Shown in pieces: positions 1,049 to 60,481 of a stretch of DNA of 64,000 bases (position 1 is the first letter of the stretch; every line of letters starts with the position of its first letter). The stretch spans positions 11,780,001 to 11,844,000 of the forward strand of contig NW_026262712.1 in the NCBI RefSeq assembly GCF_021869535.1. Direction: 5' to 3'. The DNA comes from Mytilus californianus. Its lineage: Eukaryota. The translations under genes were made by a program, and so were the position numbers. The notes beneath the pieces were generated by a model. That model searched no databases. It worked only from the letters and a program-made list of their open reading frames with translations, and had not been told where the DNA came from.

Positions 1049-3757
1049 TAACCATGTGAAACTATACACGTGCTTTTAACACATATCTTTAAGTTGCTAA
1101 AGTAAATTTCTGCGCTTACCCAGCATATTCTCTTTGTTCACTACTGGATTCAGTACCTTGTCCTAAATTGTTGCATAAAGGAAACGTTTTTTATTGTTAT
1201 GGTTTCATGGAAACCTGTGATGGATTCTCTTTTTGTTTTTGTTATTCTTTTTGATAAAATACCTCAGATGATGTTCAGACATTTTGTGTTTTCCTACAGT
1301 TTTTTTTTCACTTAAAAAAACGAATATCTGAAGATGTATATCGTTGACACTATTCCTCTGTAGTATTTTGAAAGACGGCTGTTATAAAGTGTTTAGAAAC
1401 TTTAAAGACGTTTTGGGTATCAACGAGTGTTAGGTCAAACCGCATTAGCAAAAGACTTGTAAATAACTCAGTAGTTATTGGATAAGACGACTTTCTATTA
1501 TGACACGTTGATTTTTATTCGGTGTGTTTCAAACGGCATCACATGTACTATGTGAACGTATATGCGAGAGAAAAAAAAAGACGGGAGCGTTTGAAATAAT
1601 TCACAATTAATTAAACTGCTTTTTTACAGAATAGAGAGTAGCAAATTTATTTGGTTACAAATAATGCGCTAAAACAGATTGTTTTTAAATTAAAGTTCAG
1701 TATACACGTAGTTCATTTGACCATCAATAAGTTTTACAAAAAAAATTATAGGTAACGATCCGTCCTTCACTGATAAAATATTTATGAAATGGCTGATCCT
1801 TTAGTCCAGATATCAAGATCAAATGTTGGATACTTTGAATATTTAATTTAAAATATAATTTTAATCTTCTGTTTTGCCATTAGCAATTTTTAAATAACCC
1901 TCTATTTCGGTCAATGACACTTACGGTGTACGATGAAATAACGGACGCGTATAGGACATATATGATTTATACATCACTTTTCATTGAAATGCATGTGCTT
2001 TAAAATTGTGTTGTTATGAATTAACGCCGAGTCCGTTGTACTCGACAAGTAATTTATTACAACCATTTAGATTGGCAAAGTGAAAAACTAACATTTAAAT
2101 GGAGTTCCTTATTTTTTATGTTTCTGTATGTTGTTATCAAATCGCAAGTAATATCGATTGGATATTATTAAGGAAACGTCCGAGCACATATAATTACTAT
2201 AAATTGTGTGGGTTTCTTTTTGCCATTTGAATATGGACTTTCCGTTTTGAATTTACCTCGGAGTTCGGTATTTTTGTTATTATACTTCTATGAAGTGTTT
2301 TACTTTGGGTCTTTTTTGGGGTGGGGGGTCAAAACGCTCCAAAACAATTTGGGAAAAACAGTTATCAATACATCGTAGAAGACTATGTCACGAGGTAAAA
2401 TACACCCTTAACACCATGGTGTACAAACAACAATAACCTCACCTTGTGTCAACCAAAAGGAAGGGAAGTCGAATTATAAGTATTTAAATTTGATAATATT
2501 CTCGAATAACACGCAAATCTTGTTGAACATAAATTCAAGAACAAAACAACTAAATAGACGGGTACATTGTGTAGGCATCTGGGCAAAAGAGACATTAGAT
2601 TGAATACACATAAAATATAATTCATGTTTTATCCTTAACTACTCAAACATAAATGATTTTTATTATCCAAATTTTTCCAAGACAGCTAAAAAGTCTTCGT
2701 CTGGAAATATGAAATAAACGGAGAGACTTTTCGTTTCTTTGCAATCAATTTAAAATCGAAAGTTAATTTGATAAACTAAAGCTTTACAACCAAAGCAATC
2801 TCATATTAATCCAAGTAACAATAACAGACATATAGGCAACATGTTGACCAATATATAAAATGGTCAACCATTTTGTTTTTCTTTGTTGATATACATAGTT
2901 GTTTGTTTTTTTAGTGATTAAGATTATAACACAATGATGACTAAATAACATCCATTTTTTACATTTTGTTATCTATTATGCCTGTTTGTTTTGCTAACAC
3001 ATTGTTGTCAACATTATGGAATTCTATTAGACTATCATACATGTGAGAGGTTTAGCTAGCTTTTAAACCAGGTTCATAGAAAGGGATGAAACGAAACGAA
3101 ATTTACCAAAACAGAACAAAACGATATGAAATAAATATCTTTTGAAAAACTAAATATAACACAAAACAAGACGCTAACTTGTTTGATCTATAAGAAGAAA
3201 ATGAGTAATATATTTCTTTAGATTGAACAATTAATTAGTAAAACCTTATTTTGACACTTTGATTGTAAAGTATGTTCTTGATAAGTGATTGTCCTATTAT
3301 TTTGACCTATTATAGCTGGAATGGATTACAATTTATGATTGAAATGGATTAAATAGTTAAACCAACAAAAATCATAATACTTTGAAGTTTACTGATGCAG
3401 TAAAAATTGATATCGTTTAAGTGTCATATGAATATGAATAAAATTGCTTTAAAAATAAACAATATCAAAACGTTGCAAAAGGAAAGAAAGGAAAAATCCT
3501 TTGAACTAAATCTTAAAGCTAATAGACTTATATACAACAACAATATTTCAGATTACTGGATGCAAGGTTGGTAAGAATAGTATTTACATATATGGGTTGA
3601 AACAAGTTTATCTATTTTATTCTATTTTAAAGCATTTAATTCTTTTTTTTATATAAAACAAAAGTTAATAGTAAAAAGATCCGTATCATTGAACTGTAAA
3701 ATCCTTTATGCATAAAACAAGATTATAATACTATTTAACAGGACACGATTTTACGCC

Positions 3758-3793
3758 TATATAAGTTAACGCAAAGTTTATTCAGTTTCAATT
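3758..3793 (+). promoter_or_regulatory. TATA box plus initiator of secreted-protein gene A
   Basis: TATATAAG at 3758 and TCAATT with its A at 3790. The paralog has the same 32-nt spacing (TATATAAA 60414, TCAATT A at 60446). Confidence 0.6.
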
Positions 3794-3825
3794 AGACCAT
3801 TGAAAAATTACAAGACTGAATCAAG
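3790..3825 (+). other. Predicted non-coding first exon of gene A
   Basis: Ends at AAG|GTAAAT (GT at 3826). Matching acceptor TTTCAG| at 4163. Both sites are conserved in the paralog (60481/60482; 60827 and 61889). Confidence 0.55.
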
Positions 3826-4184
3826 GTAAATATTTCGCAACATTATTTCTATTAACACTTTAAAAGGTCTTCAACTCATTTAAACAAACCAGATACAAAG
3901 GTATGCTAACATAACAGTCTAGTAAATTATTATTATTAGCATTGTTATATTCCTTTTTTTGGGGGGAGGGGTACGAATTTTTTCTGTGTGTGAACTAACT
4001 TTTGTGACGAGCTATTCTTATTTGAAAGAAAAGACTGATTGAACAGACTACATCATATTCGTTGGCATGTTTCAGATAAAGGATTTTAGATCAGTCGAAT
4101 AGAAACGTTTTATGACAAAAACTATACAGCAGATCTTAAAAAAAACCATTATAACTGTTTCAGGAAATTTCGCCCTTCAGGAAG

Positions 4185-4266
4185 ATGTTACAAAAGAAAC
4201 CACAAATACTGTTGTTGATATGTTGTATAATGTTTGTTGATGTTGGGGCTTGGTTTAGAGGGAGAG
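4185..4266 (+). CDS. Gene A coding exon 1: signal peptide MLQKKPQILLLICCIMFVDVGA-WFRGR
   Basis: ATG, short basic n-region, hydrophobic core, small-residue cleavage site; donor GAG|GTAAGT at 4267 (phase 1); conserved in paralog. Confidence 0.85.
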
Positions 4267-5441
4267 GTAAGTCTTCTTATTGCCGGTTTCCTAGTTTTTG
4301 TAAATTAAAATATAAATCGTGTGTTTCATCGATTTACTATTGTCGAGCTCTATTCATTTATTGTTGTATACCTCATGTGATAAACTAAAACATAATAATA
4401 CTTATATGATTTGCAAATACGGAATACGTTGATATGATTGGTCGAGAGCACTTCCGGTAGTTGTTTTTGACGTTGTTTATTTTTCGAGAAACGACATTGA
4501 CAGAACTTTTTTTTGTAACCAATGAAAAAAAGATTGCAGCGATAAAAGCACATTTCAGTTTGACGTTAAAAACATGTTTTTTTTTCACTTCGCGTTATAA
4601 TCGTTAAATTAGATAATAAACACAAAACATTCATTTCAATGATAATAAGAGTTTAAGTTTATTATTTATTAGAAAGCAAATTTCATGGTGTACATATTTT
4701 TGCGTTTACCAACAAATATATTCATGCGCCAGACCAATTCAATGACACAAATATACAATTTACGTATGATACTGGTTACTAGTGTGGTAAAGTAAATTCA
4801 TTATCTCTAATCTTAATGAATTATAAGGATTAAACGCCTTTTGAAATAAATATATTGGTGTATAAACTGAACCAAGTCAATCACAAACATATCATAAAAG
4901 TCCTTCGGACGTCCATTTGTTCAGCGGAGAAGGAGCAACAATCAATTTCTACGTCTTTGTTTTAAGTCTTCTAGAAATATAGCATTCCCACTTCATAACA
5001 TCTTGAAATGTCAATATCTATAATGAAATTGGGTACTATTAGTTGCATTGTGTACTAGTGACCTCATACGACATATATGGGGACAGTTATTTCCATATTA
5101 GATGAGAGCAAAGCTCAAATCCCTAGATGGAATTTTATGACCTTACATATTGTATTAAGTCACTAGCATACTATGTAACAAATTTATCTTACCGACTATC
5201 TTAACATGTGGTTTTTATACTAGTGACCGATCAAAGTGACCAAGTCTTCAATACCGTTAGTATAAGTCTAAAAAAAACAAATGCCAATTAAAACAACTTG
5301 AAAAAATTATTTATAAAGACGGTACAACATACTCATATCAAGTAAAGATAAAGATGATTTAGTAATCAGATACTTCTGTCTAAAATGAAGACTCAAACGA
5401 GGAGTTTTAATATTATTTTTAATCATTGTTTTTCATTACAG

Positions 5442-5737
5442 CTTACCATCTCACGCATATTGCTAACGGAACACGTAATACCATAAAGATTGAATTGGTG
5501 CAGGGTACAAATACTTATACACGAGAAATCGAACCTAACACATACGTAAGGATCAGAACTGGAATCGGTCGCCAAACCTTGTGTGTTTTTGCTGTCGATG
5601 ATATTACGAGGGACAATGAAGTCTGTCGAAGTGAAAGAACTGATCGTAGTTTTGTAATCAGAACAAGTGGTGGACAACCCAAAATTTACAGAGCAATTTA
5701 TGGGAAGATTTGGAAGATCGACAAGAAAAATCCGTAA
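5442..5737 (+). CDS. Gene A coding exon 2: mature part of an uncharacterised small secreted cationic protein (AYHLTHIANGTRNTIKIEL…YRAIYGKIWKIDKKNP)
   Basis: Acceptor TTACAG| at 5441 is phase 1, matching the previous exon. 81/94 aa identical to the 63.5-63.8 kb paralog, with 13 purely synonymous codon differences (hand count), indicating coding constraint. Confidence 0.85.
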
Positions 5738-5857
5738 ATTCAATGATGTCTGATGTTGAAAAGACAGTATAAAATTGTTTTAAAACTACATTCTTTCAAA
5801 AAATTGTTCTTTTAAATTTTGTATTGTTTCAGAATAAATATTTCTCTTATCGCAATG

Positions 5858-5863
5858 AATAAA
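5858..5863 (+). promoter_or_regulatory. Polyadenylation signal of gene A
   Basis: AATAAA in a 3' UTR conserved with the paralog (AATAAA at 63948-63953). Confidence 0.55.
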
Positions 5864-5879
5864 AAATATATTTTATTAT

Positions 5880-6480
5880 AAAAAGTTAAATCACAAAAAT
5901 ACTGAACTCCGAGGAAAATTAATACGGAAGGTTCCTAATCAAATGGCAAAATCAAAAGCTCAAACATATCAATTGAATGGACAAAAGCTGTCATATTCCT
6001 GACTTGGTATAGACATTTTCTTATGTAGGAAATGGTGGATTAAACCTGGTTGTATAGCTAGCTAAACCTCTCACTTGTATGGCATTTGCATTAAATTCAT
6101 TATATTGACAACGACGTGTGAACAAAACAAACAGACATAATAGGTAAAGATGTCAAAAATAGGGGTACATCAGTCAACATTGTTTTATAACCTAATCAAT
6201 ATAAACACAAACAAATATGTAAACAAACATTTACCGTGGCACAATGACACAATGACGGGATTTATAGGCACAGAGCCACGTCACATGCAGCAAGGAAACA
6301 CAAAAAGGTATACAGGCAAAGCAAAATTAGCAAGAATGAAAGACAAGAATACAAAACATTTTATAAAACAATTACACAATGCATGACGGTATGTATAAGT
6401 ACAAAGCCACGTCATGTTTAACAAAGAAACACAAAAAAGGCATATAAACAAAGGATATTAGCAAAAATAGAAGACAAGAC
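5880..6480 (-). repeat. Interspersed repeat family R3 (…gactgtcatacaagtgagaggtttagctagctataaaaccagg…); related copies near 2900-3075, 8030-8270, 9620-9840, 27690-27930, 37170-37340, 43020-43380, 58530-59040
   Basis: Shared motifs recur many times in both orientations; boundaries approximate. Confidence 0.7.
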
Positions 6481-10000: not shown

Positions 10001-10384
10001 CGGTAGAAACGACATGTATTTGTCATGTAAGTTGCGTGCTTACGAGAGAAAGGAGCCAAAAAAATACGCTACGCGACACACAAAAGTGCATTATTTACGA
10101 TTGAAATTGAAATTAAACAGCGATTAGATCTTACAGGATAAATAGCTTGTTATTGCTGGCATATTCTATATGGGTATGAGCTTTTGATTTAGCCATTTGA
10201 TAAGAGACTTTCCGATTTGAATTTTTCGTGGAGTTTGGTATTTTTGTTATTTTCCTTTGTTCACTAAGGTTCATAATTTAACTTTACTCTATAGACGCTT
10301 TCATGACAGTGTCAAAGAGAAAAAATAAAAGAAACGAAATAAATTTTCATTACCTCTTGTCGCCTTATACAAACGTTGACTTTT

Positions 10385-11765
10385 GTTACACTCTGGTCAC
10401 CTTACACAGATATTGACCTTGACCACCTCTGATCACCATACACAGATACTGACTAAGAAATTGACTTCGGTTTCCTCTGGTCCTCATCCACAGATATTTT
10501 GTTCTTTTGACACAGATATTGACTTTGGTTACCTCCTGTCAACTTACACTGATGTTCTGATAACTTTACACAAATATTTAATTTTTTTACCTCTGGTCAC
10601 CTTTCACATTTATTGATTTTAATTCCATCTAGTCACTTGACACAGATATTGACCTCTCTTCACCTGACATTAGGTTCTGGTCACATTACCAAATTATTCA
10701 ATTTGGTATACTTAGGTCACCTTACACAGATATTCACTTTGGTTAAATCTGGTATCTTTGCACATATATGGACTATGTTTATCCATGGACATCTAACAAC
10801 CATGTTGTTCTTTTGAAACAGATATTGACTGTGGTAACCTCTGGCCACCTTACTTACACATATGTTGATTTTTTAGCTACCCAATAGTGCCTAGCACAGA
10901 TATAACATCTAACAACCATGTTGTTCTTTTGAAACAGATATTGACTGTGGTAACCTCTGGCCACCTTACTTACACATATGTTGATTTTTTAGCTACCCAA
11001 TAGTGCCTAGCACAGATATTGGTTTCTTTACCTTTGATCATCAGACACATATATTGACTATGGTTATCTCTGGTGACCTTACACAGATATTGACTATTGT
11101 TACATCAGGTAACCTTACACAATTGTTCTGGTCACCTTATACATATATTTAATTTGGTTACGACTGGTCACCTTGGAAAGATTTTGACTATGTTTACCTC
11201 TGGTCACTTACAATGATGCTCTGGTCGCAACAAACAATTATTCAATTTTGTTATCTTTGGTAACCTCAAAAATATACTAACTACGATTACCTCTAGTCAT
11301 CTTACACAGATATTGACTATTGTTATCTCAAGTAACCTTACACCAAATGTCTTCACTTTTCACATTAATTTCATTTTGTTGCCTCTGGTCACCTTCCAAT
11401 GACGTTCTGGTCACATTACACAGTTATTCAATTTGTTAACCTCAATTCTCCTAGCACAAATATTGACGTTGGTCAACTCTGATCATCTTACAAAGATATT
11501 CACTTCGGTTACCTCTGGTCAAATTACACAGCTATTGACTTTGTTTTCCTCTGTGCACATTATCTACTCATATGTTGACTTTGTTTACCTCTGGTTTCAC
11601 ACAAACATATAGACTTTGATTACCTCTGGCCACCTTACACACACATTGATATTGGTGACCTTTGGTCACCTTGAGCATACATTGGCTATAGTTACCACTT
11701 GTCACCTAACAGATATTTTGATTGTTTATCTCTAGTCACTTAATACGGATATTGACATGGGTACA
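10385..11765. repeat. Degenerate ~36-bp minisatellite (consensus ~GGTCACCTTACACAGATATTGACTTTGGTTACCTCT) with an exact 116-bp higher-order duplication (10789 and 10905)
   Basis: Recurrent acctctggtcaccttacacagatattgact motif; many indels between units. Confidence 0.9.
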
Positions 11766-14175: not shown

Positions 14176-15621
14176 GAACCCGACTTTGTACTAGACCGAC
14201 ACTCTGATTCATTTTTTTCCACGTGCAATTCACAAGATAACAGTTCACATGGCGACATCATACTCGGAACATTATTATGTCTCCCGACCGACCAATCATT
14301 GCTCTTACTCCTAGATATTGAGCGGATTGATTTTAAAAGGAACGGAACAGATGAACGGACGGAAACAAAAAAACTCAAAAGTATGATATTCCTTTGCTAT
14401 CATAAATAAGCTAACCATTATAATAAATGCCGCTCTAACGTTTAATTACATATTAAAGCTTGTCCTAGAATCAATGCATCTTTGTCATGATAACAAAAAA
14501 AAAAAAAAAAATAAGTGAGTACCAAATTAGATTTATCACCGGGTTTGTACTAACATGAGCAACAAGACGGGTGCACATTGTGGAGCAGGATATGTTTAAC
14601 ATTCCGGAACACCTTAGATACCCGGTTTTTGGTATTGTTGCCCAGTCTTTAGTTTCTATGTTGTGTTTTGTTGTACTATTGTTTGTCTGTTTGTGTTTTA
14701 CTTGTTCAACCATGGCATTGTCAGTGTAACCTTTGCGGATTGGTTTACGTATGTGAAACGAAAGGAAGGCTAAACAAACGTATGTGCAGCCATAGATCAG
14801 ATATCAACCTCAATGCAATCGACATTCTGTACCAGCATTTTAATCAGCCTGATCATTCCATCGTTTCTATGACAGTTCGTATTATCGAAAAAATATACCA
14901 CAAGACTAACAATCCTCAACTTGCAACGCCTCTCCGTAGACAAAAAGAGGACTACTGGATTCGACAATTGGGAACTGCGACACCATATGGTTGCAATGAC
15001 AAAATTGATGGTATAGGTTTTTTTTTATCTAGTCCTTCCTGAAGCTCGGTGAATGTGATGAATATTTTAAACTCTACTCCTCGACGTAGACGCAGTCATG
15101 GTCATCGTCATTATACATCACCTACTTTGCATGATATCTCTATTAATGACTTACTGCCATTTATACAAAAGCCGTTAGGTATTCATCACATTCGAACGAA
15201 ACTTTATTCATTACCCCTTTCAAAACTTCATTGTCTGTTCAATTTATGTTTGGAAACCACTGTTACAAACTCTCATTCAAACCAATACAAACTTACAGCT
15301 ATCATTTCGGATATTGCAAGTCACAGACTTTTCAAACCAGTTTGCATTGGAAAAGATGAAAAAGAGAAAAGATCTTTTCTTAAACTTTCCTTTGCCAACA
15401 AAGGTCTCGATGGCGTCAACTTAGTCAATATCCTTCATCATAAATTAGTTCAGTCGAAAATACCTCCTTATTTTAAAGATCAGTCTGTACCAATAATTTC
15501 TTATAATAAAATTGAGAATGGAAATGGGGAATATGTCAAAGAGACAACAACCCGACCATAGAGCAGACAACAGCCGAAGGCCACCAATTGGTCTTCAATG
15601 CAGCGAGAAACTCCCTCACCC
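14176..15621 (+). repeat. Upstream unit of a tandem duplication (partner 15622-19186) carrying internal deletions
   Basis: 14176-14324 = 15622-15770; 14328-14725 = 16010-16403; 14726-15516 = 18396-19186, all near-identical. Confidence 0.9.
14726..15505 (+). pseudogene. Duplicated fragment of the Naiad-type PLE GIY-YIG endonuclease/linker region
   Basis: CNLCGLVYVCETKGRLNKRMCSHR… GIY-YIG-like motif; near-identical to 18396-19175. Confidence 0.85.
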
Positions 15622-15860
15622 GAACCCGACTTTGTACTAGACCGACACTCTGATTCATTTTTTTCCACGTGCAATTCACAAGATAACAGTTCACATGGCG
15701 ACATCATACTCGGAACATTATTATGTCTCCCGACCGACCAATCATTGCTCTAACTCCTAGATATTGAGCGCTTAGTAAAGAGATTGTCAATCTCTAAGTT
15801 GAACCCGCCGATGATCAAACTCAAGACTTGACACACTCGAGGCGAGCAAGATACAGAATA
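15622..15860 (-). mobile_element. Decayed tRNA-headed SINE (partial copy 14176-14324; possible diverged copy ~63060-63250)
   Basis: The minus strand reads ttgctcgcctcgagtg…gagtttgatc (A/B-box-like head), then a body ending ggtctagtacaaag, resembling a common bivalve SINE from memory. Confidence 0.5.
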
Positions 15861-17022
15861 ACCACCGATTTTGAAGAGAGTTGTATGTAGATATATATTA
15901 AAACATTTTAAACAAGAACATATGCATAATATCACACCGTGTTCCCTCACATTCTCACATCTCCATGTTTAGCAAATCACATAATACGGGAAAGTCTTTA
16001 TTAAGTGTATGATTTTAAAAGGAACGGAACAGATGAACGGACGGAAACAAAAAAACTCAAAAGTATGATATTCCTTTGCTATCATAAATAAGCTAACCAT
16101 TATAATAAATGCCGCTCTAACGTTTAATTACATATTAAAGCTTGTCCTAGAATCAATGCATCTTTGTCATGATAACAAAAAAAAAAAAAAAAGTGAGTAC
16201 CAAATTAGATTTATCACCGGGTTTGTACTAACATGAGCAACAAGACGGGTGCACATTGTGGAGCAGGATATGTTTAACATTCCGGAACATCTTAGATACC
16301 CGGTTTTTGGTATTGTTGCCCAGTCTTTAGTTTCTATGTTGTGTTTTGTTGTACTATTGTTTGTCTGTTTGTGTTTTACTTGTTCAACCATGGCATTGTC
16401 AGTCTATAATTTCTTGTTAAGTTAAAATGTCTCAACACAGATAATCCATCCATTAACGAATACTTCATGATTCAATCGTGCTTGATGTATCAGGAAATCA
16501 ATTATTAGACGAGGAGTTTCGAAATCATCTGCAGATTTCATTATCGCATCTCAAAAACCATCTAAATTCAAATAATGCAGTATTTCATCAGCGAAATGTT
16601 AAGCTTCAGCTTTCTGATATTTGATCAAACATTACTCATGAGGTAAAATTTTTAAGTAAGTTTTATAACAATGATAGGCACAATTCAGTCGATAATGCTT
16701 TTGTACGAATTTTCAGTTTGCATATTTACTTTGAACAAGCTACCTTACTACGCATGCCTTCGAACATATTTCAGATGCGCAGGATAAAGGTCATTCTTAA
16801 AATGTAAGCCTCGAAAGATATAGAAATCCTAGTGGTAGTCAGACAGACACACCATTTTAGTTTTGGACTATTTTGGTTGACACAAACTTGCTTCAGTTAT
16901 GGCAGACTTGTATTGAACAGGTGTTCAAATGCAATGGTCAAGGTTACTATAGATCTATGTTCTAGTGGTTCAATTTTGTTGTTTGAAACGATAATACTAC
17001 CTTAAATTGAGAATGGAAATGG

Positions 17023-17830
17023 GGAATATGTCAAAGAGACAACAACCCGACCAAAGAACAGATAACAGCCGAAGGCCAACCAATGGGTATTCAACGCAGC
17101 GAGAAAACCTCGCATCCGGAGGCGTGCTCCAGCTGGTCCCTAAATACAATGATGCACTTGTTCAGTGAAAATGGACATCATACTAAACTCTTAAACGTAT
17201 AAATAAACTAAGATTAAAAAACATACAACACCAATTAAGGTCAGAGGCTTCTGACTTGGGACAGGCGCAAAATTCGGTGGGTTAAACATGTTTAGTGAGA
17301 TCTCAACCCTTCCCTTATACCTCTAGCCAATGTAGATTAAAGAAACACACAGCAATACGCATAGTAAAACTCAGTTAAAAAAGTCCGAGTCCGATGTCAG
17401 AATAGGTAACAAAAGATACTAAGCAAAATGACAATGATACATAAATTAACAAAGGACTGCTAGCAGTAACTAACATGCCAGCTCCAGACCTCAATTAAAC
17501 TGACTGAAAAATTATGTCTTCATCATATGAAAATCAAGCATAATCCCTCCCGTTAGGTATTTAGTATCATACGATCATAAAATGTATGAGAAGAACATAA
17601 CTCGTATCTTGCCAACAACTGGTTTTAGAATAAATGTGTTTATTTCCGATGCAAAGACCCTATGAGTGAATCGATATTAATACCAAAATGTGCAATCCTT
17701 AATTTTCCGACAAAAGTAACGTAACTATATCCCTTCTGAATAGGTCTATTTAAAGGTTTGGTTAGCTTTTGAGGTGAATGCCGACATTTTTATGTATAAT
17801 TCACCAATCACAAATAACTCAAATTATTTT
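17023..17830 (-). mobile_element. 3' fragment of a second PLE subfamily; its 3' UTR is the abundant R2 repeat (aaattgagaatggaaatgggg…), also at 15509-15621, ~34420-34545, ~40940-41045
   Basis: Minus-strand remnant KCRHSPQKLTKPLNRPIQKGYSY…FGINIDSLIGSLHRK* (~17640-17790) resembles a PLE ORF C-terminus and is followed by the R2 sequence. Confidence 0.55.
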
Positions 17831-17844
17831 GATAGCTTTGCTAT

Positions 17845-20800
17845 ACTGTCCCTCTGGTATCTTTTGTCCCTCTTTCATAACCACTTGGTCGATGTCTCTG
17901 CTAGTGAACATTTTGTCCCTGAGAACATCATCCGCCTAGTAGCAAAATTGCATGAATTTACGAAGATCTAACAGGATACTGGCTCGGACGTCGCCCAGTA
18001 GCAAAATTGCATGAATTTACGAAGATCTAACAGGATACTGGCTCGGACGTCGCCCAGTATAAAAAGGTCCGAAACAGACGTCAGTCCATGGTGTCCCCTC
18101 ATCTCCAGACATGACAAATATCACAAACATGACTCATTCAGATCATCATACTAGTGACAATAGCAATAGTACACATACACAGCCATGTTCAGTTCTTCTT
18201 AAAGACATTTAGGATTTTGATGACTCTGAACAGCACTGTCTCATTTCGAAATGTGGAACAAATGGCTGCAAAACTTGTGAAATTTTAATAACAGATGCTC
18301 AATTCACTAGCAATTTAACTGAAAAGTCTTATTTTACTAAAAGTTACGATGATATGAATTGTGTAAATCTATAAATGTCGTCTACGGATTAGAGTGTAAC
18401 CTTTGCGGATTGGTTTACGTATGTGAAACGAAAGGAAGGCTAAACAAACGTATGTGCAGCCATAGATCAGATATCAACCTCAATGCAATCGACATTCTGT
18501 ACCAGCATTTTAATCAGCCTGATCATTCCATCGTTTCTATGACAGTTCGTATTATCGAAAAAACATACCACAAGACTAACAATCCTCAACTTGCAACGCC
18601 TCTCCGTAGACAAAAAGAGGACTACTGGATTCGACAATTGGGAACTGCGACACCATATGGTTGCAATGACAAAATTGATGGTATAGGTTTTTTTTTATCT
18701 AGTCCTTCCTGAAGCTCGGTGAATGTGATGAATATTTTAAACTCTACTCCTCGACGTAGACGCAGTCATGGTCATCGTCATTATACATCACCTACTTTGC
18801 ATGATATCTCTATTAATGACTTACTGCCATTTATACAAAAGCCGTTAGGTATTCATCACATTCGAACGAAACTTTATTCATTACCCCTTTCAAAACTTCA
18901 TTGTCTGTTCAATTTATGTTTGGAAACCACTGTTACAAACCCTCATTAAAACCAATACAAACTTACAGCTATCATTTCGGATATTGCAAGTCACAGACTT
19001 TTCAAACCAGTTTGCATTGGAAAAGATGAAAAAGAGAAAAGATCTTTTCTTAAACTTTCCTTTGCCAACAAAGGTCTCGATGGGGTCAACTTAGTCAATA
19101 TCCTTCATCATAAATTAGTTCAGTCGAAAATACCTCCTTATTTTAAAGATCAGTCTGTACCAATAATTTCTTACAATAAAATTGAGGATTATGCCAGGCA
19201 ATGGGCTAAACGCGAGAAAGAAGAAGTAGATACTCTTTCCGAATGGATTAAGGCTGTTAGGTCGTTGATACAAATCCGAATTAAGAAACTAAATGGGTCT
19301 ATCAATACCCACGCTACGTCAATTTTTAAAGACCCAAATGTTTAAAAACACTTGGCCTACCTCGATGACAAATATGTTGTTTGCCCCGCAGATAAAACCC
19401 CAAACAACATCGTTTTTGTGTGTAAATATCATTACATAAACTGCTTGATAAATGAATTAGGTATTGACAATTCATTTGGAAAATCAACATATACCCTCAC
19501 GACACTTACCAATGAGGAAATCCTAGATAATCATAGGTCTGTTCTATGTTCCTTTCGAATTTCAACCAAAGATGAAGAACTGGATCTTCCATCACTGTAT
19601 TGGATACCTAAACTACATAAGTGTCCTTACAAACAACGGTATATTGCTGGATCTTCCCAGTGCTCCACGAAACCTCTTTCTAAATTATTAACATCTATTT
19701 TATCAGCAATCAAATCCGGGCTCCAAAGTTATTGTGAAACTGCCTATTCTAGAGGTGGCATGAATCAGATGTGGATACTAAAAAATTCCAAAGATCGTTT
19801 AGAGTACATAAAATATAAGACTCTCTCATCTTGCAATAGTATTAAAACATTTGACTTTTCTACACTTTACACAAGTATTTCCCATTCCAAACTAAAAGAC
19901 AAATTGAAAGAGTTGGTATTACTTTGTTTCATTAAAAAGAATGGCGAACGTAGATACAATTATCTTGTCTTGGGGAGGGATAAATACTACTTTGAAAAGA
20001 ATCACTCTGATTCAAACAACAAATTCTCTGAAACTGACATTATCAAGATGCTTGATTTCTTGATTGACAACATATTTGTTACGTTTGAAGGACGTGTTTT
20101 TCAACAGACTGTCGGAATTCCAATGGAAACCAATTGTACCCCTCTTCTTGCCGACTTGTTTCTTTATTATTATGAGGCTGACTTTATACAGGAACTTCTT
20201 AGGAAGAAAGATAAGAAGTTAGCAATATCCTTTAACTTTACGTTCCGCTATATAATGTTCTCTCACTAAATAATACAAAATTTTGTGACTATGTTGAACG
20301 AATCTATCCTATCGAACTAGAGATAAAGAATACTACAGATACAGTTAAGTCTGCCTCATATCTTGACTTACATCTAAAAATTGACAATGAGGGTCGGTTG
20401 AAAACAAAACGTTACAACAAAAGAAATGATTTCAGCTGCCCAATTGTGAATTTTCCATTTCTATGTAGCAACATTCCAGCAGCGCCTGCATACGGAGTAT
20501 ATATCTCCCAATTGATACGATATTCCCGGGCTTGTATTTCCTATCATGATTTCCTTGATAGAGGATTGCTGCTCACAAGGAAGCTATTAAAACAAGAGTT
20601 CCAAATGGTGAAGTTGAAATCATCCCTTCGTAAATTTTACAGACGCCATCACAAGTTGGTTGACCGTCATGGAATAACCGTTTCGCAGATGATATCGGAT
20701 ATGCTCCTTATGTCGTAACTACAATATCCTTCCCTTTTCACGAATGTGACCTACCGAAGTAGACTATTTACCAGATTTGTAATAACATAAGCAACACAAC

Positions 20801-22788: not shown

Positions 22789-25700
22789 TCATGGTGACCC
22801 CTTTTGACCAATTTCACAAGCCAATAAAAGAGGGTACTCACAACCAATGTCACATGCAGTATAATCTGCGCCTGTGTCTACCAACATTCTTACTATCTGT
22901 GCACGATTCATTCTAAAAGCCATCATTACAGGTGTATTTCCATAAATATCACATTTATTGTAATCTGATCCTATTTCCAGCAACATCCTGACTATTTCTG
23001 TATGTCCATATCTACTAGCCATTAATAAAGATGACTGACCCCAGATGTCACATTTATTATAATCTGATCCGTTTTCTAACAACATCCTTACTAATTGTAT
23101 ATGTCCATATAAACAGGACATCAGCAAAAGTGATTGATCCCGACTCTCACATTTATTATAGTCGCCTTCTATGTCTATTAACATCTTAAGTATTTCTTTT
23201 TTGCCATATTCACAAGCTGTCATGACAGGTGACTTATCAATATTGTTACGCTTAGTTACATCTGCTCCAATTTCTAACAAAAATCTTACTATTTCTTTGT
23301 GTCCAAAGCAACAACTAATCATAACAGATGAATTTCCATCATTGTCACATTTATTATAATCTGCTCCTTTGTCTATCAAAATCCTTACTATTTTTGTGTG
23401 TCCATATCTACAAGCCATCATCAGAGGTGATTGTCCATTATTGTCACATTCATCAAAATCTGCACCTTTGTCTAACAACATTCTAACTATTTCTGTATGA
23501 CCGAATATAGCAGCATTCATGATAGGGGACTGACCTAAATTGTTACATTTCCTATAACCTACTCCTTTGTCTATCAACATTTTAACTATTGTTATATGTC
23601 CATTTCTACAAGCCATCATCACAGGTGATTGACCCCAACTCCCACATTTATTAAAATCTCCTCCTCTATCCAAAAGCATCCTGGCTATGTCTGACTGACC
23701 TTTTTCACATGCAATCATTATAGACGACTGATCCCACTTTATACATTTATTGCAATCTGCTCCTTTGTCTAGTAATATTTTCACTATTTCTGCATGACCA
23801 TACCCCGAAGCCTTCATTAAAATAGAATTTCCCATATTATCACATTTATTACAATCTACTCCCTTTTCACACAACATCTTCACTATTTCATTTTGTCCAT
23901 ACATACTAGCTAACATAACTGATGACTGGCCATATATGTCACACTTATCATAATATGTATCTTTGTTTAACAACATTCGTACTATTTCTGTATGACCAAG
24001 TCCAGCAGCAATCATTACAGGTGACTGACCAAATTTGTCACATTTATTATAATCTGATCCTTTTTTAACAGCATTCTTACTAGTTCTGTATGACCACCTC
24101 TACAACTCATCATCACATGTGACTCACCAGTACTGCACCATTTGTTAAAATCATCTCCGTTGTCTATCAACATCCGTACTATTTCTGCATGCCCATGTCC
24201 AGTAGCAGCCATTAAAGGTGAATTCCCGAGATTGTCACATTTATCATAATCTGCTCCTTTTTCTAACAACTTCCTCACTATATCTGTATAACCACATGTA
24301 GAGGCCATCATTAGAGGTGATTGACCATAATTATTACATCGCTTAACGTCGACACCAAAATTGCAACACCATTTAAACAATGCAATATCTCCTATAAAAC
24401 AACAATGTTGCATGACAGTGTCAAATGCAACACCCATATAAACATCACTCATAGTCCATAATGTTTTATCCTCACAAGTATGCGCTAGTTGCTTCTGGTA
24501 AGATTTATCCAATGTTTTCAAATAATATAGGAGTTTCTGTCTAAACTGATGTATCGTGATATTGATATTTTTAAATACAACTTGTAATTTTCACTTTGAC
24601 CAGTCTTCAGTTATTCTCTGTATGTACATTTCATGATACTCGGTAGGCACAATAGTAATTAAATGATCTATGTCGTCTTTTCTTTCGAATAAAAATCGTG
24701 TCTTGATCAAATGACTGTCAGCATTCTGGATTAAGCAATGGATTATTTTTTGTCCAAAGTAGTAAACAAGAAATTCAAATATTTTAATGAAATTAGTACC
24801 GTTTATGTTATAATCATCTGTTGTTCTATAAAAGCTCAAAACAATATTTTCTGTATTATTGGTATAACATGGGTCAGTTACTTTCGATAAAAATATATTC
24901 AAGAGTGAATCAAACGCTTCCTTTAAAATAAGTCGTGATGTCCCTCTGTCCAATTTACATGCCTTGCAAGTGTTCTCAATAATGGTTTTTGTTTCTTCGT
25001 TAAACTCTTTAGTCAATATTTCTTCATACACCTTGTTATTGAATACAACACATAATGCCAACGCACAGTATTTAGATTTATTATTTTCTACAATTTTGTC
25101 TATTAACATCATTACTATTTCTGTATAACCTTGTTTGCATGCAATAAATAAAGGTTTTTTATGATGTAAACTATCATATTTATCATAGTCTGCACCTTCC
25201 TGTAACAACATTCTAACTATTTCTTTATAACCTCTAATACAAGCAATCAAAACTGGTGACTCACCAACCGTGTTACAATTATCATAATCTGCTCCTTTGT
25301 CTATCAATATTCGTGCTATTTCTGTATGACCATGTTTACAAGCCATAATTAAAGGTGACCTTCCATAAGATCCACATTGATTAATATCAATATCATGATT
25401 ACAACACTACTTGACCATTTGAATGTCTCCAATCGAACAACAATGTATCATGACAGTGTCACAAATATCTATTTTATTCCAACTCTTCCTAGCTTTATTT
25501 TCATCAATATCACATGTATTTACTAGTTTGTGCTGGTAACATAGATCAAATGTATTAAGATAATAAAGGAATTTCAGTCTGAACTGCCTTATCTTCATGT
25601 TTATGTTATTAAAAACATCTTGTAACTTCCCCTTTGACCAGTCATCAATAATTCTCTGCATGTATAGTTGATGATACTTGGTTGGCACAAAAGTAAATAA

Positions 25701-26769
25701 CTGATCTATGCTATCTTTCCTGTTTAACAAAAATCTTTCACGGATCAAACGGCTTTGTGCATTTTTAATCAAGCAATAAATAATTTTCTGTCCAAAAAGT
25801 GAGCTAGAATGTCGAAAAGTTTGTCATGTATAGTAGTATAGAAGTTTTGTGTTCCTGTTGTGAGTGTATTGTTTTCTGTCGTTTCATTCACTTTTTCCTC
25901 CTTCTTTAAGAATGTAAATAAAAGCGAATCAAGTTCATCTTTTAAAATAAGTCTTGATGTTCCTCTGTCAAGTTTACAAGCTTCACAAGTGTTCTCAATT
26001 ATGCTTCTTGTTTCTTCATCAATCTCTTCCGTAAATATTTCTTCATTCACTTTGTTATCGAAAACGATACATAAAGCTAAGGCACAGTATTTACCCAAAA
26101 ATCCCTTCGTTTGTAGCTGTTCAACCTGTTCTTCATAAACCGAAAAAGGATTCTGGAAAAAATATTTAATATCAACCGCCGGGTTTTCATGATATAATTT
26201 ACACAAGAGTGGGAAACAATCATAAAGATCATAAAAATTTGTAATTTGAGAGGCTTTTTCATCAAGATAAAGCTCGGCAATCGATTGCTTTTCAGCTTTT
26301 GATAAGCACATATTTTCTGACAACAAATTACACACACATGACGTAAAAACTGATAATGTTTCAAATTTTTCATCTTGGTACACTTGTAATCTACATGCTA
26401 CAATTATCTTTATTTTTTTATTATCAAGAAGGTCTTTAATACGCTCAATAACGGGTTCCCAAATTTTTAGATCAGACAGGTTTAAAGAAAAATTTCCACA
26501 TAAATCATCAATTACAAACAATGTCTTCTTATTTGGATTGTGAAACTGGACAATGTCCCCTGGATCTGTTACTAAAAGTATGTCGAATCCATCTACACCC
26601 ATTTGTAAAGCAACATGTTGGAGAGTTACCGTTTTCCCAACACCGGAACTAGCCGTTATAGTAACACAGCTGTTCTCTTTTAAATACTTCAGTACTTGAG
26701 TTGCAGCTCTTGTGTTAACAAACATCTGATCTCTCTCCTTCCATTTTCCCAGTATTTTGTTAATCTGAG
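22789..26769 (-). pseudogene. Exon 4 of HEPN-STAND-ankyrin gene: nSTAND3-like NTPase, helical region, 3 ANK, second helical region, ~15 ANK
   Basis: Acceptor TTTCAG| at 26770 (phase 1). Walker A ASSGVGKT (26630-53), Walker B LFVIDD (~26505-26522), 33-aa ankyrin repeats. Five ORFs join through -1 shifts in homopolymers (25794-98, 24061-66) and in-frame stops (25407-09, 24591-93). Confidence 0.9.
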
Positions 26770-27986
26770 CTGAAATATAAACCAATCCTTTTACTACAAA
26801 CACGTTTTTTATGCTGTATTTTGAACCATGCAATAAAATATGCTATATAACACTGATTTAAAGCATTTCCAAGTTTCTCAGTTGTCTTCATTAGGAACTA
26901 CTTCTTAAAATATTTTCTCGTCCTACTACTTGTGTATTAAAAGCATTATTTAAAAAGGTTTAAATATTAATGCATCTAAAATATCTAAATCGTGAACACG
27001 GTGACAAAGTAAAAAGTTAATGATAATGAATTTAGAACGTTATATACAGTTCATGTACATAGTTACATATTAGAAATCTCAAACGTATTTCCAATTCTTT
27101 CATGGATAACATTTCAAACTTTTATCCTAATGTTCCTTTGAAATAATTTACCATTATAATCTGACCTCAAAGCCTCAGAACGCTTTAAAAATTCGTAACT
27201 ATTTAGAACTTGATGTATCATGTCATACTGTATGGAAACCCACCTATCTCATTGAGGTTTATCTAACATCTCATTTTACAAGTAAAAAAAAATATTTAGC
27301 CGTCACAACTTGTCTATGTTTTATAACTGAAATTATAAATTTTAACCTCACATATTCCAGCGTTTCATAATAACGCACAACCTTCCAGGTACCAACATCT
27401 AACATGTCGAGTTAAAATTAGCCCGCCTTTCAAATTCCCACATTCTTAGTTAACCTCTGAGATTTCAATGGAACAGTCATATATCCTCAAGTTAAAGAAC
27501 TCATTTCAACAATAGACACTTACTTTTAGTTTTAACCTTCAAGATCCTATCTTATTAATCTGACTTTAGCATCTCTCATGTTCTGAACATAATAGTTACT
27601 TTACAGGGCTTGGTTTTCACATATTAAGCTTTGAACGTTCCTAATGAAAGTAAATCCAGAAAAGCACCCCAATTTTGACATGTTTACCTATTATAACTGT
27701 TTGTTTTGCTCACACATTGTTGTCAACATAATGGAGTTCAATTCGACTGTCATACAAGTGAGAGGTTAAGCAAGCTATGAAACCACGCTTAATCCACCAT
27801 CTTTTACATAAGGAAATGTATGTTCCAAGTTAGGAATATGATGTGAATTACCTTTTGGTTTAGCCATTTGGGAAAGGACTTTCTGTTTAGAATTTTCCTT
27901 GGAGTTCGATATTTTTGTAATTTTACTTTGACGGACGCATGGGTTGTTTTCATTTTTTTTACAAGTTTGATATTCAAACTGTTTAC

Positions 27987-52634: not shown

Positions 52635-53523
52635 AATTTCTAAATATTTATTTGATTATCCAATAAAAAGTTCCATTTCTTTTGTTTAATTTCAACTTGT
52701 ATCAGCCTGTATTATCATGTCAGTACCAAAAAAAAAAACAAAACTGGCTAACAGTCCATTAGCTGAGGTATCGACCCAGTGGTGGTAATAAAATAAACGG
52801 TACCAATTTTTTTACACTAAATAAGCAGTTCTATGTCTCTTCAGAGATGGTAGAGGCCAAAATATTTGAAAATCCAAAACCTTTTATAACACAATATCCG
52901 TATTTTCATGCCAGTACTGAAGTACTGGATACTGAACTGGTAATACCATCGCGAACAAGAAGTCTGCTAGCAGAGGTATCGCTTAAATGTACACGCAAGA
53001 ACACGCATATCTAATTGAACATCAAACTCGTGAATAACAAAACAACTAAATAAATGGGTACATTGTGAGCAAAAAAGACATTAAATTGAATTCACAAATG
53101 CCGCACTTTTCATTGGATGTAATTCATGATTTGATTTCTAACCTTAATTACTAAAACATAAATTCTTTTTATTATCCAATTTTACCAAGGCAGCTAGCAG
53201 GTACTCGTCTGAAATTATGGAATAAATAGAGATACCTTTCGTTTCTTTACATTCAATTCAACATTGAAAGTAAATTTGATAAGAAACCAAAGCAATATCA
53301 AATTAATCGAGGTAAGTATAACAGACATATAGGCAACATGTAGACAATTATAGAAAAGGGCTACCATTTTTTTTCTTTGTTGACATAGTTGTTTGTTTTA
53401 TAGTGATAAAGATTATAGCACAATGTTGACTGATGTGCCCCAATTTTTGACATTTTTATCTATTTTATCTATTATGTCTTATGTTTGTTTTGCTCACACA
53501 TTGTTGTCAATATAATGGAATCT

Positions 53524-54209: not shown

Positions 54210-57200
54210 CGCCAGGTAGTTTCATATTCCGGAAACGGTTTTCCGATGTGTGTTTGACATTTAACATAAACTCCCTGTCTTCCTGTTTTACGATAATATA
54301 ACTTGGCATTTTACTGTGTTAGTCAATAAATAGACAATATCTCAAGTCGTACATTTGTGTAGTGATTTTCCTTATTGGCGTGGTTGCAGCGAGATTACGT
54401 CCCACGTTCTTCGTACAAATGTGTGTAAGTCATTCCGTAATAAAAACATAACTGTGAACGCAAGTGAACGACAACCTAAATATTATCCTAAACATGGCTA
54501 GTTCCACCCGGGCACCGAAGCAGTGGTGCTTAACAAAGATTGAAACTGTGAACACTTTTGAAAACTGGCGCCAGATCCTTGTATATACATTATCTTTAGA
54601 CAAAAACTTTGCTCCTTTTCTTGTGTCTGGAACCAAATGGGAAAAGAAAACAAAAACAACAACTCACATGGGGTTTGCAAATGATGGGGAAGAAGTCCCA
54701 GAAGCCTACAGAAAAACCCGAGAGCAAAAAGTTAGCATGCTTGAGCTTATGTTAGGACAGATTGCCAACTACTGCCCAATAATTTCTAGGAACACCATTG
54801 TCAAAAACTCCACATCGATCGACAGCATTTGGCAAACCATCCGCCTCCACTATCGTTTTCAGATTACTGGTGCGCATTTTGTTGACTTTGATGCTATTCA
54901 CTATGATCCAGGTGAGAGACCTGAAAATTTGTACCAACGGTTAATGGCCTTTATTGAAGACAGTCTGCTAAGAAAAGATATGGGTATAACTCACCACGAT
55001 GAAGACATAGAGGACGACGAGGAACTATCACCTACATTAGAAAACCTCTTAATATTGACATGGCTTCGTCTCATCCACCCTGAGCTACCTAAACATATAA
55101 AACAGAGATATGGTACAGAGCTTCGTGCGAGAACACTAGCATCTATAAAACAAGAAATAGCACAAGCTCTAGAATCACTTCTAGAAGAGTTACGTACAAC
55201 AGAGGATGCCAAATCCATGAGAGCAGCCGTCAAGTGCTTTCCAAAGACAAAACAATCTTCGTTTGTGCCCCGCTCAAACTTCAAATCATGCCCACTGTGC
55301 AAATCAGCAGGACGACCAGACCGTCATTTTCTTTGTCAATGCACATACTTACCACAACAAGATCGACAATTTATGGATAAAGCTCGTGCTGTATCTGAAA
55401 TTCATGATGTTGACGAATGCGATTCAGATAACCACGATAACACTGATTCAACCTTTCAAGACCAGTTCCCTGAAGTATCTAACAGAGTTCAGATTCAACA
55501 ATCACCTTATATTGACGTTTATTATGGCCACAATCCTACAAGACTTACCATTGACAGTGGTGATACTGGAAATATGATACGTGCCTCCGCCGCTACCAAA
55601 CTTAACGCAAAAATAACCAGCAGCTCACAGTCAGCCCATCAAGCAGATGGATCATCACCTCTTACCGTTGTGGGAGAAACTAGACTCACATTTACGAGAG
55701 ATAAACACCAATTGTATTTTGAGGGACTAGTAGTTGAGAACTTAGATTCTGACATATTAGCTGGTATCCCATTTATGGAGAAAAACGATACATCTATTCG
55801 TCCTGCACGCCGACAGGTACTTATAGGGAATGATTGTGTTTATAAGTATGGTTCATCCGCTAATGGAACTTCTAATTGCGCTGTGCGTAGAGCACATGTG
55901 GCACGAGCACCATCTGACGCCACAACTTTATGACCAGGAGACTACATAGATGTAAAAATACCTACAGACATGGTTTCAACTGATGACATATTTTTCATCG
56001 AACCTCACAAAAATGAAAATCTCAATTCTTGGCCTGAACCCAGTCTAGTTTCTAGCGTTGCAGGAAACCTACGAATACCTAACCTCACTGATGAACCTCT
56101 CGTTTTCAAACGTAATGAACATTTCTGCAATGAACGTTCTAAATATTCACCGGAGAATAATGAAATTAAAAGCCCGGATCATGCAGTTGCTACTAAATCT
56201 CAACTCAATAAGGCTCAAGTACTACATTCCGATCTTGTACGAGTTGACCCTGATGGTCTATTACAACCATGTATTAAGGAAAAATTTAAATCTTTACTTA
56301 GACAGTACGACAATGTTTTCAGTCCAACGTTTAAAGGCTACAATGGAGCAGTTGGAGCTCTAGAAACAAAAGTTAACATGGGACCAGTTCAACCACCACA
56401 AATAAAGGAACGGATACCTCAATATTCAAAAACCTCAACCCTCATTAATGCCAGACGTAGATTCTACACTACGACAAATTGCTCAGTGGAAACATATTGT
56501 GATTTCTGATTTGACTAAAGATTTTTATCAAATTCCGTTACATAGGGACTCGATGAAGTACTGTGGTGTCTCATCCCCATTCTGTGGTGTAAGAGTATAT
56601 GTGAGGTCTGCAATGGGGATGCCTGGATCTAAGACAGCATTAGAGGAACTTACTTGCCGTGTACTAGGCCACCTAGTACAAGAAGGAGTCGTAGCGAAAA
56701 TTGCCGACGATCTATATTGCGGCGGCAATTCACCAGAAGAACTTCTTACTAACTGGGAAAGAGTGTTACAAGCCTTACAGAAGTGTAGCCTTAATTTATC
56801 AGCTACAAAAACAATCATTGCACCTAAACAAGCTACAATTCTCGGCTGGATTTGGGAACTCGGATCAATCCGTGCAAGCCCTCACCGCATTGCTACACTT
56901 TCTAACTGTCAGCCTCCAAAGATCGTACGTGCACTTAGATCATTTGTTGGTGCCTACAAAGTGTTGTCTCGTGTAATTAAGAACTCTTCTGGACTTCTGT
57001 CACTACTTGAAAACGCAGTAGCTGGATCTGAGTCAAAAGACACAATATTATGGACTGAAGCTTAACTCAGCCTTTACTAGTGCACAAAACGCACTTTCTA
57101 CTAATCGTTCGATTGCTCTCCCTCGTCCAAACGACCAACTCTGGATTGTTTCAGACGGAGCTTTAAAAACATGCGGACTTGGAGCTACGTTGTACATAAA

Positions 57201-58529: not shown

Positions 58530-59040
58530 TGTTTGTTTGTTTGTACTGATGTACCCCTATTTTTGACATTTTTACCTATTGTGTCTGTTTGTTTTGTTCA
58601 GGCATCGTTGTCAATATAATGGAATTTGATGCGACTGTCATACAAGTGAGAGGTTTAGCTAGCTATAAAACCAGGTTCAATCCACTATTTTCTACATAAG
58701 AAAATGCCTGTACCAAGTCAGGAATATGACAGTTGTTATCCATTCGTTTGATGTGTTTGAACTTTTGATTTTGATTTTGCCATTTGATTGGGGACTTTCC
58801 TTTTTGAATATTCCTCGAAGTTCAGTATTTTTGTGATTTTACTTTTTATTCTATGCGACTGTCATACAAGTGAGAGGTTTAGCTAGCTTTTAAACCAGGT
58901 TTTAAGAAATGACTGTACCAAATCAGGAATATGACAGTTGTTCTCCATTCGTTTGATGTGTTTGAGCTTTTGATTTTGCCATTTGATAAGGGAATTTCCG
59001 TTTTGAATTTTCCTTGGAGTTCGGTATTTTTGTTATTTTG
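58530..59040 (+). repeat. R3 repeat with tandemly duplicated 3' part (period ~224)
   Basis: atgcgactgtcatacaag starts at 58629 and 58853. Confidence 0.8.
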
Positions 59041-60413: not shown

Positions 60414-60481
60414 TATATAAATGAATGCAATGAACATGCAATATCAATTAGACCATTGAAAAATCACAAGACTGAATCAAG
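60414..60481 (+). promoter_or_regulatory. TATA/Inr and non-coding first exon (60446-60481) of the paralogous secreted-protein gene
   Basis: Aligns with 3758-3825; donor AAG|GTAAAT at 60482. Confidence 0.55.

Follow-up and report, generated by a model that had tools for sequence, protein, structure and literature searches.

What does the small gene at 3758-5863 of this stretch of Mytilus californianus DNA encode, from what is it descended, and what might its product do? The stretch, which comprises 64,000 nucleotides of contig NW_026262712.1 and is referred to in its entirety as the window, carries two related loci, and an initial annotation, made from the letters alone, described them as paralogous genes for an unannotated, small, secreted, cationic protein. 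The explanation that best accommodates the observations as a whole, and that we regard as likely, is that the first of these loci (copy 1) is an intact gene for a secreted β-sandwich protein, that it represents a derived branch of a family termed here the MG.QHN proteins, and that its product may serve as an extracellular binding module.

Copy 1 is a real and intact three-exon Mytilus gene, with GT-AG introns that can be read directly off the sequence. Its features are as follows:

3758-3765, plus strand: TATA box of copy 1, read directly, with a matching box at 60414 in copy 2
3790-3825, plus strand: exon 1 of copy 1, non-coding and containing no ATG, with its donor GT at 3826
4164-4266, plus strand: exon 2 of copy 1, consisting of 21 nt of 5′ untranslated region (UTR), the ATG at 4185, and 27 codons plus one base (phase 1); encodes the predicted signal peptide
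5442-5863, plus strand: exon 3 of copy 1, consisting of two bases that finish the split codon, 97 codons (5444-5734), the stop codon (5735-5737) and the 3′ UTR

The 5′ end of exon 1 was placed at an initiator-like site approximately 32 nt downstream of the TATA box. This exon is 84% identical between the two copies, and the region around the TATA box of copy 1 can be aligned over 441 nt, at 89.6% identity, with the orthologous locus of Mytilus trossulus. The ATG at 4185 is the first to occur in exon 2, which terminates at a GTAAGT donor; an intron of ~1.2 kb then separates the signal exon from the mature exon, the acceptor of which is preceded by a pyrimidine-rich tract. Polyadenylation signals (AATAAA) are present at 5833 and 5858. 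The initial annotation envisaged a complete gene model at both loci: for copy 1, in which the TATA box, the exons, the GT-AG introns and the AATAAA are all in place, this description stands, but for copy 2, which is damaged (see below), it does not. The spacing of the two loci, previously given as 58 kb, is ~56.6 kb when measured from start to start.

The model for copy 1 is supported by its agreement with independent annotation of other Mytilus genomes. The orthologue in M. trossulus is LOC134684201 (XP_063399546.1; P0006), the product of which has 125 residues and an identical splice junction: in a piecewise mapping, its residues 1-28 fall on 4185-4268 and its residues 28-125 fall on 5441-5734, at 89% identity in both cases, and the codon that is split across the exon 2/3 junction is common to P0006 and copy 1. 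Further orthologues are found in M. galloprovincialis (VDI16430-16432) and M. edulis (CAG2185277.1), for which three models splice differing upstream exons onto one shared exon-2 acceptor. The Mytilus orthologues are 89% identical to copy 1 over the mature exon, and they resemble it in the Cys pair, the signal exon and the C-terminal motif. A word-index search with the copy 1 protein gave matches from Mytilus only. All of the orthologues, in three Mytilus genomes, are annotated as 'uncharacterized' or 'hypothetical'; the gene is, therefore, already public as an uncharacterized protein, and the epithet 'unannotated' does not apply to the genus. At the nucleotide level, collinearity with M. trossulus CM071710.1 extends over ~5.6 kb around copy 1, at 78-90% identity. 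The arrangement in that species nevertheless differs from the copy 1/copy 2 layout, as the stretch that was fetched contains one intact gene together with a repeated promoter-like segment downstream of it. This repeat, at L001:17559-18106, reproduces the promoter-like segment of LOC134684201 (L001:8696-9064 and beyond) at a distance of ~8.9 kb; no coding exons were found near it within the fetched stretch, and it may be the trace of a counterpart to copy 2.

The absence of an assignable family, as recorded in the initial annotation, was borne out by searches against Pfam, the PDB and the literature. Pfam yielded no family for either mature exon at expect values (E) of up to 10, none for nine distant relatives and no consistent match across 56 members of the wider family described below; sequence searches of the PDB, with the single protein and with a profile, gave no match. 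Relatives were, however, found by profile searching. A profile built from mussel proteins only, and compared with 1.84 billion representatives, produced 13 matches: these comprised a second secreted Mytilus protein (P0011), proteins of ~100-150 residues with the start M-G-Q-Q-H-N, and a 2218-residue cadherin-repeat protein, and the members of the family scored E values from 1 × 10⁻⁷ to 4 × 10⁻⁴. A search with an alignment of the distant matches gave 66 proteins with E values down to 1 × 10⁻⁴⁷, and the family-wide profile recovers the mussel proteins at 1 × 10⁻³⁸; moreover, four non-mussel members used as tblastn queries match both copies of exon 3 at 1 × 10⁻⁹ to 1 × 10⁻¹². Judged by these similarities, the mature domain of copy 1 belongs to a metazoan family of stand-alone proteins of ~104 residues that has no Pfam model, and that, from the sequences collected so far, occurs in Cnidaria, Mollusca and one teleost. 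The named members outside mussels, all of them 'hypothetical' or 'uncharacterized', are from Clytia hemisphaerica (EP00111 P015285), Desmophyllum pertusum (OS493_000157), Saccostrea cucullata (XP_062567799.1) and Gymnothorax javanicus (KAJ8278532.1); the remainder derive from ENA, JGI or Logan contigs, many of them environmental. No prokaryotic or viral relatives were seen in pattern scans of GTDB species genomes and IMG/VR, and no paper on the family was found in literature searches by accession, locus tag or peptide motif.

An affiliation with cadherins (PF00028) was considered and rejected. The 2218-residue protein (P0009), which has 14 repeats, scored 3.8 × 10⁻¹⁴ with the mussel-only profile, but the match is spurious, hhalign giving a probability of 0.06% with the family-wide profile; furthermore, Pfam reports a cadherin match in none of the 56 members. 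A 285-residue member with a triple repeat, used as a query, brought up no fusions with known domains, and the longer 'members' resemble over-extended open reading frame (ORF) calls.

Copy 1 has most, but not all, of the hallmarks of this family. The domain is shared over its whole length at 30-40% identity, with motifs in strand 1, in the loop between strands 6 and 7 and in the turn between strands 8 and 9. The conserved columns, namely, two His residues and Asn-x-Thr in or after strand 1, Thr/Gly after strand 4, an [ST]-D-x-S-F loop, and an Arg and a Gly towards the C-terminus, are likewise recognizable: H2, H5, N8, T10, T39, G42, D67, S69, F70, R83 and G87 are kept, N3 is lost, and S66 is represented by Thr. 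What the mussel gene does not have is the typical start. A direct MG.QH start is seen in 66 of the 124 collected members, and many of the others carry it inside over-extended ORF calls, although some begin with Met-Ser or Met-Pro instead; the gene occupies one unbroken ORF on the long, gene-poor contigs L003 and L004. These proteins have no signal peptide and are presumably cytosolic, and the Met-Gly start of most of them, with the residues that follow it, would fit the general N-myristoylation pattern of PROSITE; if so, the parent family would be membrane-attached. The mussel gene has, instead of a Met-Gly start in a single ORF, a signal exon followed by the ~1.2-kb intron, and it therefore belongs to a derived, secreted subfamily rather than being a typical member. 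The family at large differs from copy 1 in other respects also: its median isoelectric point (pI) is 7.0, it has two Asp/Asn-rich loops that are mostly replaced in the mussel protein, and it lacks Cys at the columns of the mussel Cys pair.

An AlphaFold model of the mature exon of copy 1, calculated with a 56-sequence alignment (model m30dfddbfefb5), is all-β with nine strands (predicted local distance difference test, pLDDT, 93.2; predicted template modelling score, pTM, 0.85), and a member without a signal peptide is predicted to have nine strands in the same manner (pLDDT 91.4; pTM 0.81). The earlier expectation of a β-rich protein is, thus, upheld by the model, according to which the mature protein is a single nine-strand β-sandwich of an ordinary fold class. 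Foldseek searches, with two models against the PDB and one against BFVD, returned nothing below E = 10⁻³. The nearest structures are generic sandwiches (transthyretin-like/5-hydroxyisourate hydrolase, the extracellular domain of PepT1/2, TssJ/IglE, the VHL β domain and domain 4 of cholesterol-dependent cytolysins), which resemble the model in being all-β, two-sheet and of similar size; their best query-normalized template modelling (TM) scores are, however, 0.5-0.65, with root-mean-square deviations (rmsd) of 3-8 Å, identities of 4-18% and no shared motifs, and they reflect fold class at most, not homology. A relationship to transthyretin or 5-hydroxyisourate hydrolase was accordingly rejected (Foldseek E of 2.5 × 10⁻³ or worse and query-normalized TM of ≤0.65, with no Pfam or PDB sequence match), as was identification with a cholesterol-dependent cytolysin or other pore-forming toxin, given that the mussel protein is a single domain of ~100 residues for which there are only weak, generic matches to domain 4.

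The distribution of conserved residues over this model is uneven. Conservation was expressed as the mean share of the commonest residue across the family, near-identical mussel rows being left out; by this measure, conservation is highest in strand 1, in the loop that follows strand 6 and in the turn that follows strand 8. The loops after strands 2, 4, 6 and 8 have values of 0.57, 0.62, 0.93 and 0.86, respectively, and contain one difference between copy 1 and copy 2, and those after strands 1, 3, 5 and 7 have values of 0.47, 0.35, 0.35 and 0.46, respectively, and contain five. If the strands run up and down, as their order implies, this pattern suggests that the family has one conserved and one variable loop pole. 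The conserved pole (strand 1, the 6-7 loop and the 8-9 turn) is retained in the mussel protein.

Comparison of the two copies, and of both with M. trossulus, indicates that the protein has been maintained by purifying selection. Across 94 aligned codons, the 13 replacements and 13 synonymous-only changes counted in the initial annotation were reproduced exactly, as was the location of nine of the replacements within the first 35 aligned codons. With the Nei-Gojobori method, the ratio of non-synonymous to synonymous divergence (dN/dS) is 0.21 and dS is 0.32 over these codons (0.27 and 0.31, respectively, for the full 97), with significantly too few replacements (Fisher p = 6 × 10⁻⁵); comparisons of the copies with M. 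trossulus give ratios of 0.20-0.22. The constraint that was originally proposed is, therefore, real, and it is also visible in the identity between the copies, which amounts to 89% in the coding sequence versus 77-84% in the promoter, exon 1, the intron and the 3′ UTR. The value of dS between copy 1 and M. trossulus is 0.27, as befits a different species or a divergent haplotype, versus 0.31 between copy 1 and copy 2; the two copies, thus, arose no later than the divergence of the species, and it is copy 1 that is orthologous to the M. trossulus gene. When the three pairwise distances are apportioned to branches, copy 1 has a dN of 0.013 and a dS of 0.10 (ratio ~0.14), and copy 2 has a dN of 0.07 and a dS of 0.21 (ratio ~0.34). 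On these estimates, copy 2, which is structurally damaged, has evolved faster than copy 1, and as a paralogue it dates back at least to the divergence from M. trossulus. The 'variable N-terminal face' of the initial annotation does not hold as a property of the family: strand 1 is among its most conserved parts, and the replacements between copy 1 and M. trossulus are evenly spread (4 in the 35 N-terminal codons versus 7 in the other 62). To judge from these alignments, the N-terminal excess is better read as change specific to copy 2, most of it in loops of the variable pole.

The secreted branch is not confined to the orthologues of copy 1. Three such genes lie within ~20 kb in M. trossulus, namely, LOC134684203 (XP_063399547.1/VDI23585.1, the P0011 mentioned above), a gene at L001:3613-5119, and LOC134684201. 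In each of them, a separate first coding exon specifies a signal-like peptide that ends in Ala and is followed by W-[FW]-x-G, and a pair of Cys residues flanks the loop between strands 5 and 6. The first two genes have in common with copy 1 the domain, the layout of two coding exons, the Cys pair, and the Ala followed by W-W-G; they are, however, only ~35% identical to it, are not cationic, have lost both strand-1 His residues, and have a much shorter Cys-flanked loop (6 residues in P0011 and 4 in the gene at L001:3613-5119, as compared with 13 in copy 1). No part of the family alignment varies more in length than this loop, and outside mussels the two Cys columns are occupied by other residues. 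The LOC134684201 lineage has a pI of 9.8-10.0 versus the family median of 7.0, and P0011 is about neutral. The strand register of the model would place the two Cys residues opposite one another across the hairpin, where they probably form a disulfide staple. The gene at L001:3613-5119 of CM071710.1, ~5 kb upstream of LOC134684201, has an open second exon; it was returned by no protein search, and may be unannotated. Its counterpart in M. californianus would sit just beyond the left end of the window, in which tblastn found only copy 1 and copy 2, and no exons of the P0011 type or of other family members.

Whether the product of copy 1 leaves the cell depends on its N-terminus. The protein is ~125 residues long, of which the first six include two or three Lys/Arg, with two Lys near the start; these are followed by a core of 11 apolar residues (mean Kyte-Doolittle hydropathy 3.5) and by V-G-A at positions −3 to −1 of a predicted cleavage site after residue 22. 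The mature part, beginning at residue 23, would comprise ~103 residues with a pI of ~9.8, a net charge of ~+9 and 5% Tyr; a recount agrees with the 19 Lys/Arg, 10 Asp/Glu and two Cys reported initially, the six residues left over from the signal exon after the predicted cleavage being included. A rule-of-thumb check, in which a cleavable signal peptide has a basic n-region, an apolar h-region of 7-15 residues, and small residues at −3 and −1, finds all three elements in copy 1. An apolar core of 11-17 residues and V-x-A at −3/−1 are, moreover, kept in the orthologues and in two more distant mussel paralogues, and we infer that the protein is probably secreted via a cleavable signal peptide, as the initial annotation had it. 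Because the relatives outside mussels have no signal, one might suppose that the N-terminus acts as an uncleaved membrane anchor, or that the mussel protein is intracellular as its relatives appear to be. We consider this very improbable: a core of 11-17 apolar residues is short for a membrane span, in each of the three mussel lineages V-x-A or T-x-A precedes a conserved W-[FW]-x-G, and the Cys pair has been gained only in the lineages that carry the signal.

If the protein is indeed secreted, its history might be reconstructed as follows. In the mussel tandem cluster, the Met-Gly start would have been replaced by a signal-peptide exon; on moving outside the cell, the derivatives would have gained the Cys pair, and the LOC134684201 lineage would, in addition, have become strongly cationic. 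The mature protein would then work in the extracellular space as a small binding module, making use of the conserved pole that it has inherited, and its positive charge would favour anionic targets, such as microbial surfaces, mucus or the extracellular matrix. A binding or recognition role via the conserved pole of the model is put forward tentatively, as a possible but still doubtful assignment. The more ambitious proposition, that an intracellular and possibly N-myristoylated family became secreted through the acquisition of a signal exon, a disulfide and positive charge, and that mussels thereby acquired, from an undescribed β-sandwich with a conserved binding pole and a variable pole, a new class of proteins for recognition or defence outside the cell, strikes us as somewhat unlikely in its entirety. 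Several observations temper the account of the protein as a binding module. P0011 is not cationic and has lost both strand-1 His residues, and so neither the charge nor these residues can be essential to all secreted members; the proximity of the Cys residues and the sharing of one pole by the conserved loops are read from strand order; and the Foldseek neighbours, being only generic, neither support nor contradict a binding role.

Two other functions must be set against that of a binding module. The protein could be a direct antimicrobial or membrane-damaging effector that kills by virtue of its charge or by forming pores: its net charge of ~+9 and its secretion signal would suit such an activity, as would its membership of a lineage-specific tandem cluster of the sort that houses many mussel defence genes, and domain 4 of cholesterol-dependent cytolysins is among its weak Foldseek neighbours. 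These cytolysin matches are generic, however (E of 5 × 10⁻³ or worse, query-normalized TM of ≤0.57 and rmsd of 6-8 Å), the parent family is signal-free, with a median pI of 7.0, and P0011 is about neutral. The protein, furthermore, has neither an amphipathic helix nor the Cys array of the known mussel antimicrobial peptides, nor any Pfam or PDB match, and we rate an effector of this kind as quite unlikely. Mussel antimicrobial families (defensin, mytilin, myticin, mytimycin, big defensin, myticalin and CRP-I) have either an array of 6-12 Cys residues or a linear, Cys-free sequence rich in Pro/Arg, and copy 1, a β-sandwich of ~103 residues with two Cys and no Pfam match, was not placed in any of them. 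More broadly, the initial annotation had listed toxin, antimicrobial, lectin-like and gamete-recognition functions, and nothing was found that supports any one of these specifically. A structural or matrix component of the byssus, the shell matrix or mucus is the other alternative. Many lineage-specific secreted matrix proteins are present in mussels, and secretory products that are tissue-specific and highly expressed typically come from TATA-driven genes with a short 5′ UTR; the cationic character of the protein and its 5% Tyr would also be compatible with such a function. The sequence, though, shows no low-complexity or repeat composition, but folds, according to the model, into a compact, conserved globular domain, the conserved loops of which are inherited from relatives without a signal peptide. 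A matrix function is, on this account, improbable, and we retain the extracellular binding module as the preferred description.

Mussels secrete large numbers of defence and matrix proteins that are specific to their lineage, and most of those described are Cys-rich peptides. The present gene would add one of a differing kind, namely, a globular β-sandwich whose relatives in other phyla carry no signal peptide. That family can now be defined for the domain databases, no name, Pfam model, structure or paper having been found for it. Although the gene itself is already annotated, its secreted conversion in mussels is new relative to anything that was searched; it offers a tractable example of how a protein without a signal can be turned into a secreted one, by way of a signal exon, a disulfide and altered charge. 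The gene is also a candidate whose expression could be studied in the context of mussel immunity or of matrix biology.

The second locus is collinear with copy 1 (blastn aligns 3086-5869 with 59680-63958):

60414-63953, plus strand: copy 2, damaged paralogue, bounded by its TATA box and by the one AATAAA that it has
60887-61143, no strand assigned: element of 257 nt with terminal inverted repeats, resembling a miniature inverted-repeat transposable element (MITE); read directly, and apparent both as a gap in the collinearity and by inverted-repeat detection

The mature ORF of copy 2 is open for 97 codons (63535-63825), but a single frameshift separates it from the signal exon (phase 1) if the orthologous splice sites are used. 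The signal exon and its flanks are duplicated within 60734-62129, at 99-100% identity between the two; one of the signal exons is interrupted by the 257-nt element, and the other is uninterrupted and ATG-initiated, having a few extra in-frame bases instead. Either the segment was duplicated very recently and the element left a footprint on excision, or two alleles have been assembled in tandem. Between the duplicated exons is a 300-nt repeat (61322-61621) that is 98% identical to 52754-53053. The proximal AATAAA has been lost, and the distal one is kept.

An open mature ORF is unlikely to have persisted by chance at this base composition, and hence copy 2 has been disabled recently, or is used via another junction, or owes the discrepancy to an error of assembly; between a dead and a living gene we see the chances as roughly equal. 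That copy 2 still works, the frameshift being an assembly indel or a null allele, or being bypassed by an alternative in-frame acceptor, and the duplicated signal exon representing tandem-assembled alleles, is a serious possibility, if a little short of an even one. All 97 codons are free of stops where ~7-8% would be expected to be stops, the lineage dN/dS of ~0.34 is below 1, and the TATA box, the exon-1 donor, one intact ATG-bearing signal exon and its GT donor are all there; the near-identity of the signal-exon segments is, in addition, what would be expected of alleles or of a very recent event. Set against this, the orthologous splice sites would join coding exons that differ in frame, the non-synonymous branch is about five times that of copy 1, and one polyadenylation signal is gone; an alternative acceptor, moreover, would delete strand 1, which is among the family's most conserved parts.

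Inverted copies of one interspersed repeat family, 81-91% complementary to one another, occur at 5915-6193 and 58545-59010, and, therefore, adjoin copy 1 on its 3′ side and copy 2 on its 5′ side; they may bear on the origin of the duplication. More of this repeat is present at ~2950-3130 and at 27670-27925.

The remainder of the window, the G+C content of which is ~32%, contains no Rfam match. Between the two copies, on the minus strand at 22789-26833, long ORFs encode a STAND nucleoside triphosphatase (NTPase) domain (Pfam nSTAND3, E = 7 × 10⁻²⁵) followed by many ankyrin repeats (E = 8 × 10⁻⁸⁵), to which a tandem array with a 99-nt unit corresponds in the DNA (22848-24289). The locus is probably a single member of the NTPase-ankyrin gene family, which is large in bivalves. 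A segment on the plus strand at 54464-57065, with a G+C fraction of ~0.40, several consecutive ORFs and one weak RVT_1 match (E = 1.5 × 10⁻⁷), looks like the remnant of a retroelement, the coding region of which is split over several ORFs. Perfect direct repeats of 300 nt are found at 14723-15022 and 18393-18692, and repeats of 98-99% identity at 14328-14728 and 16010-16406; the ORFs inside 14328-18692 have no Pfam match, and either a mobile element has inserted here recently or the region has been duplicated locally. Lastly, 10345-11724 is occupied by a degenerate array with a period of 36 nt, in which at least 16 units are 60-75% identical, and which includes a perfect 116-nt tandem pair at 10789-11019.

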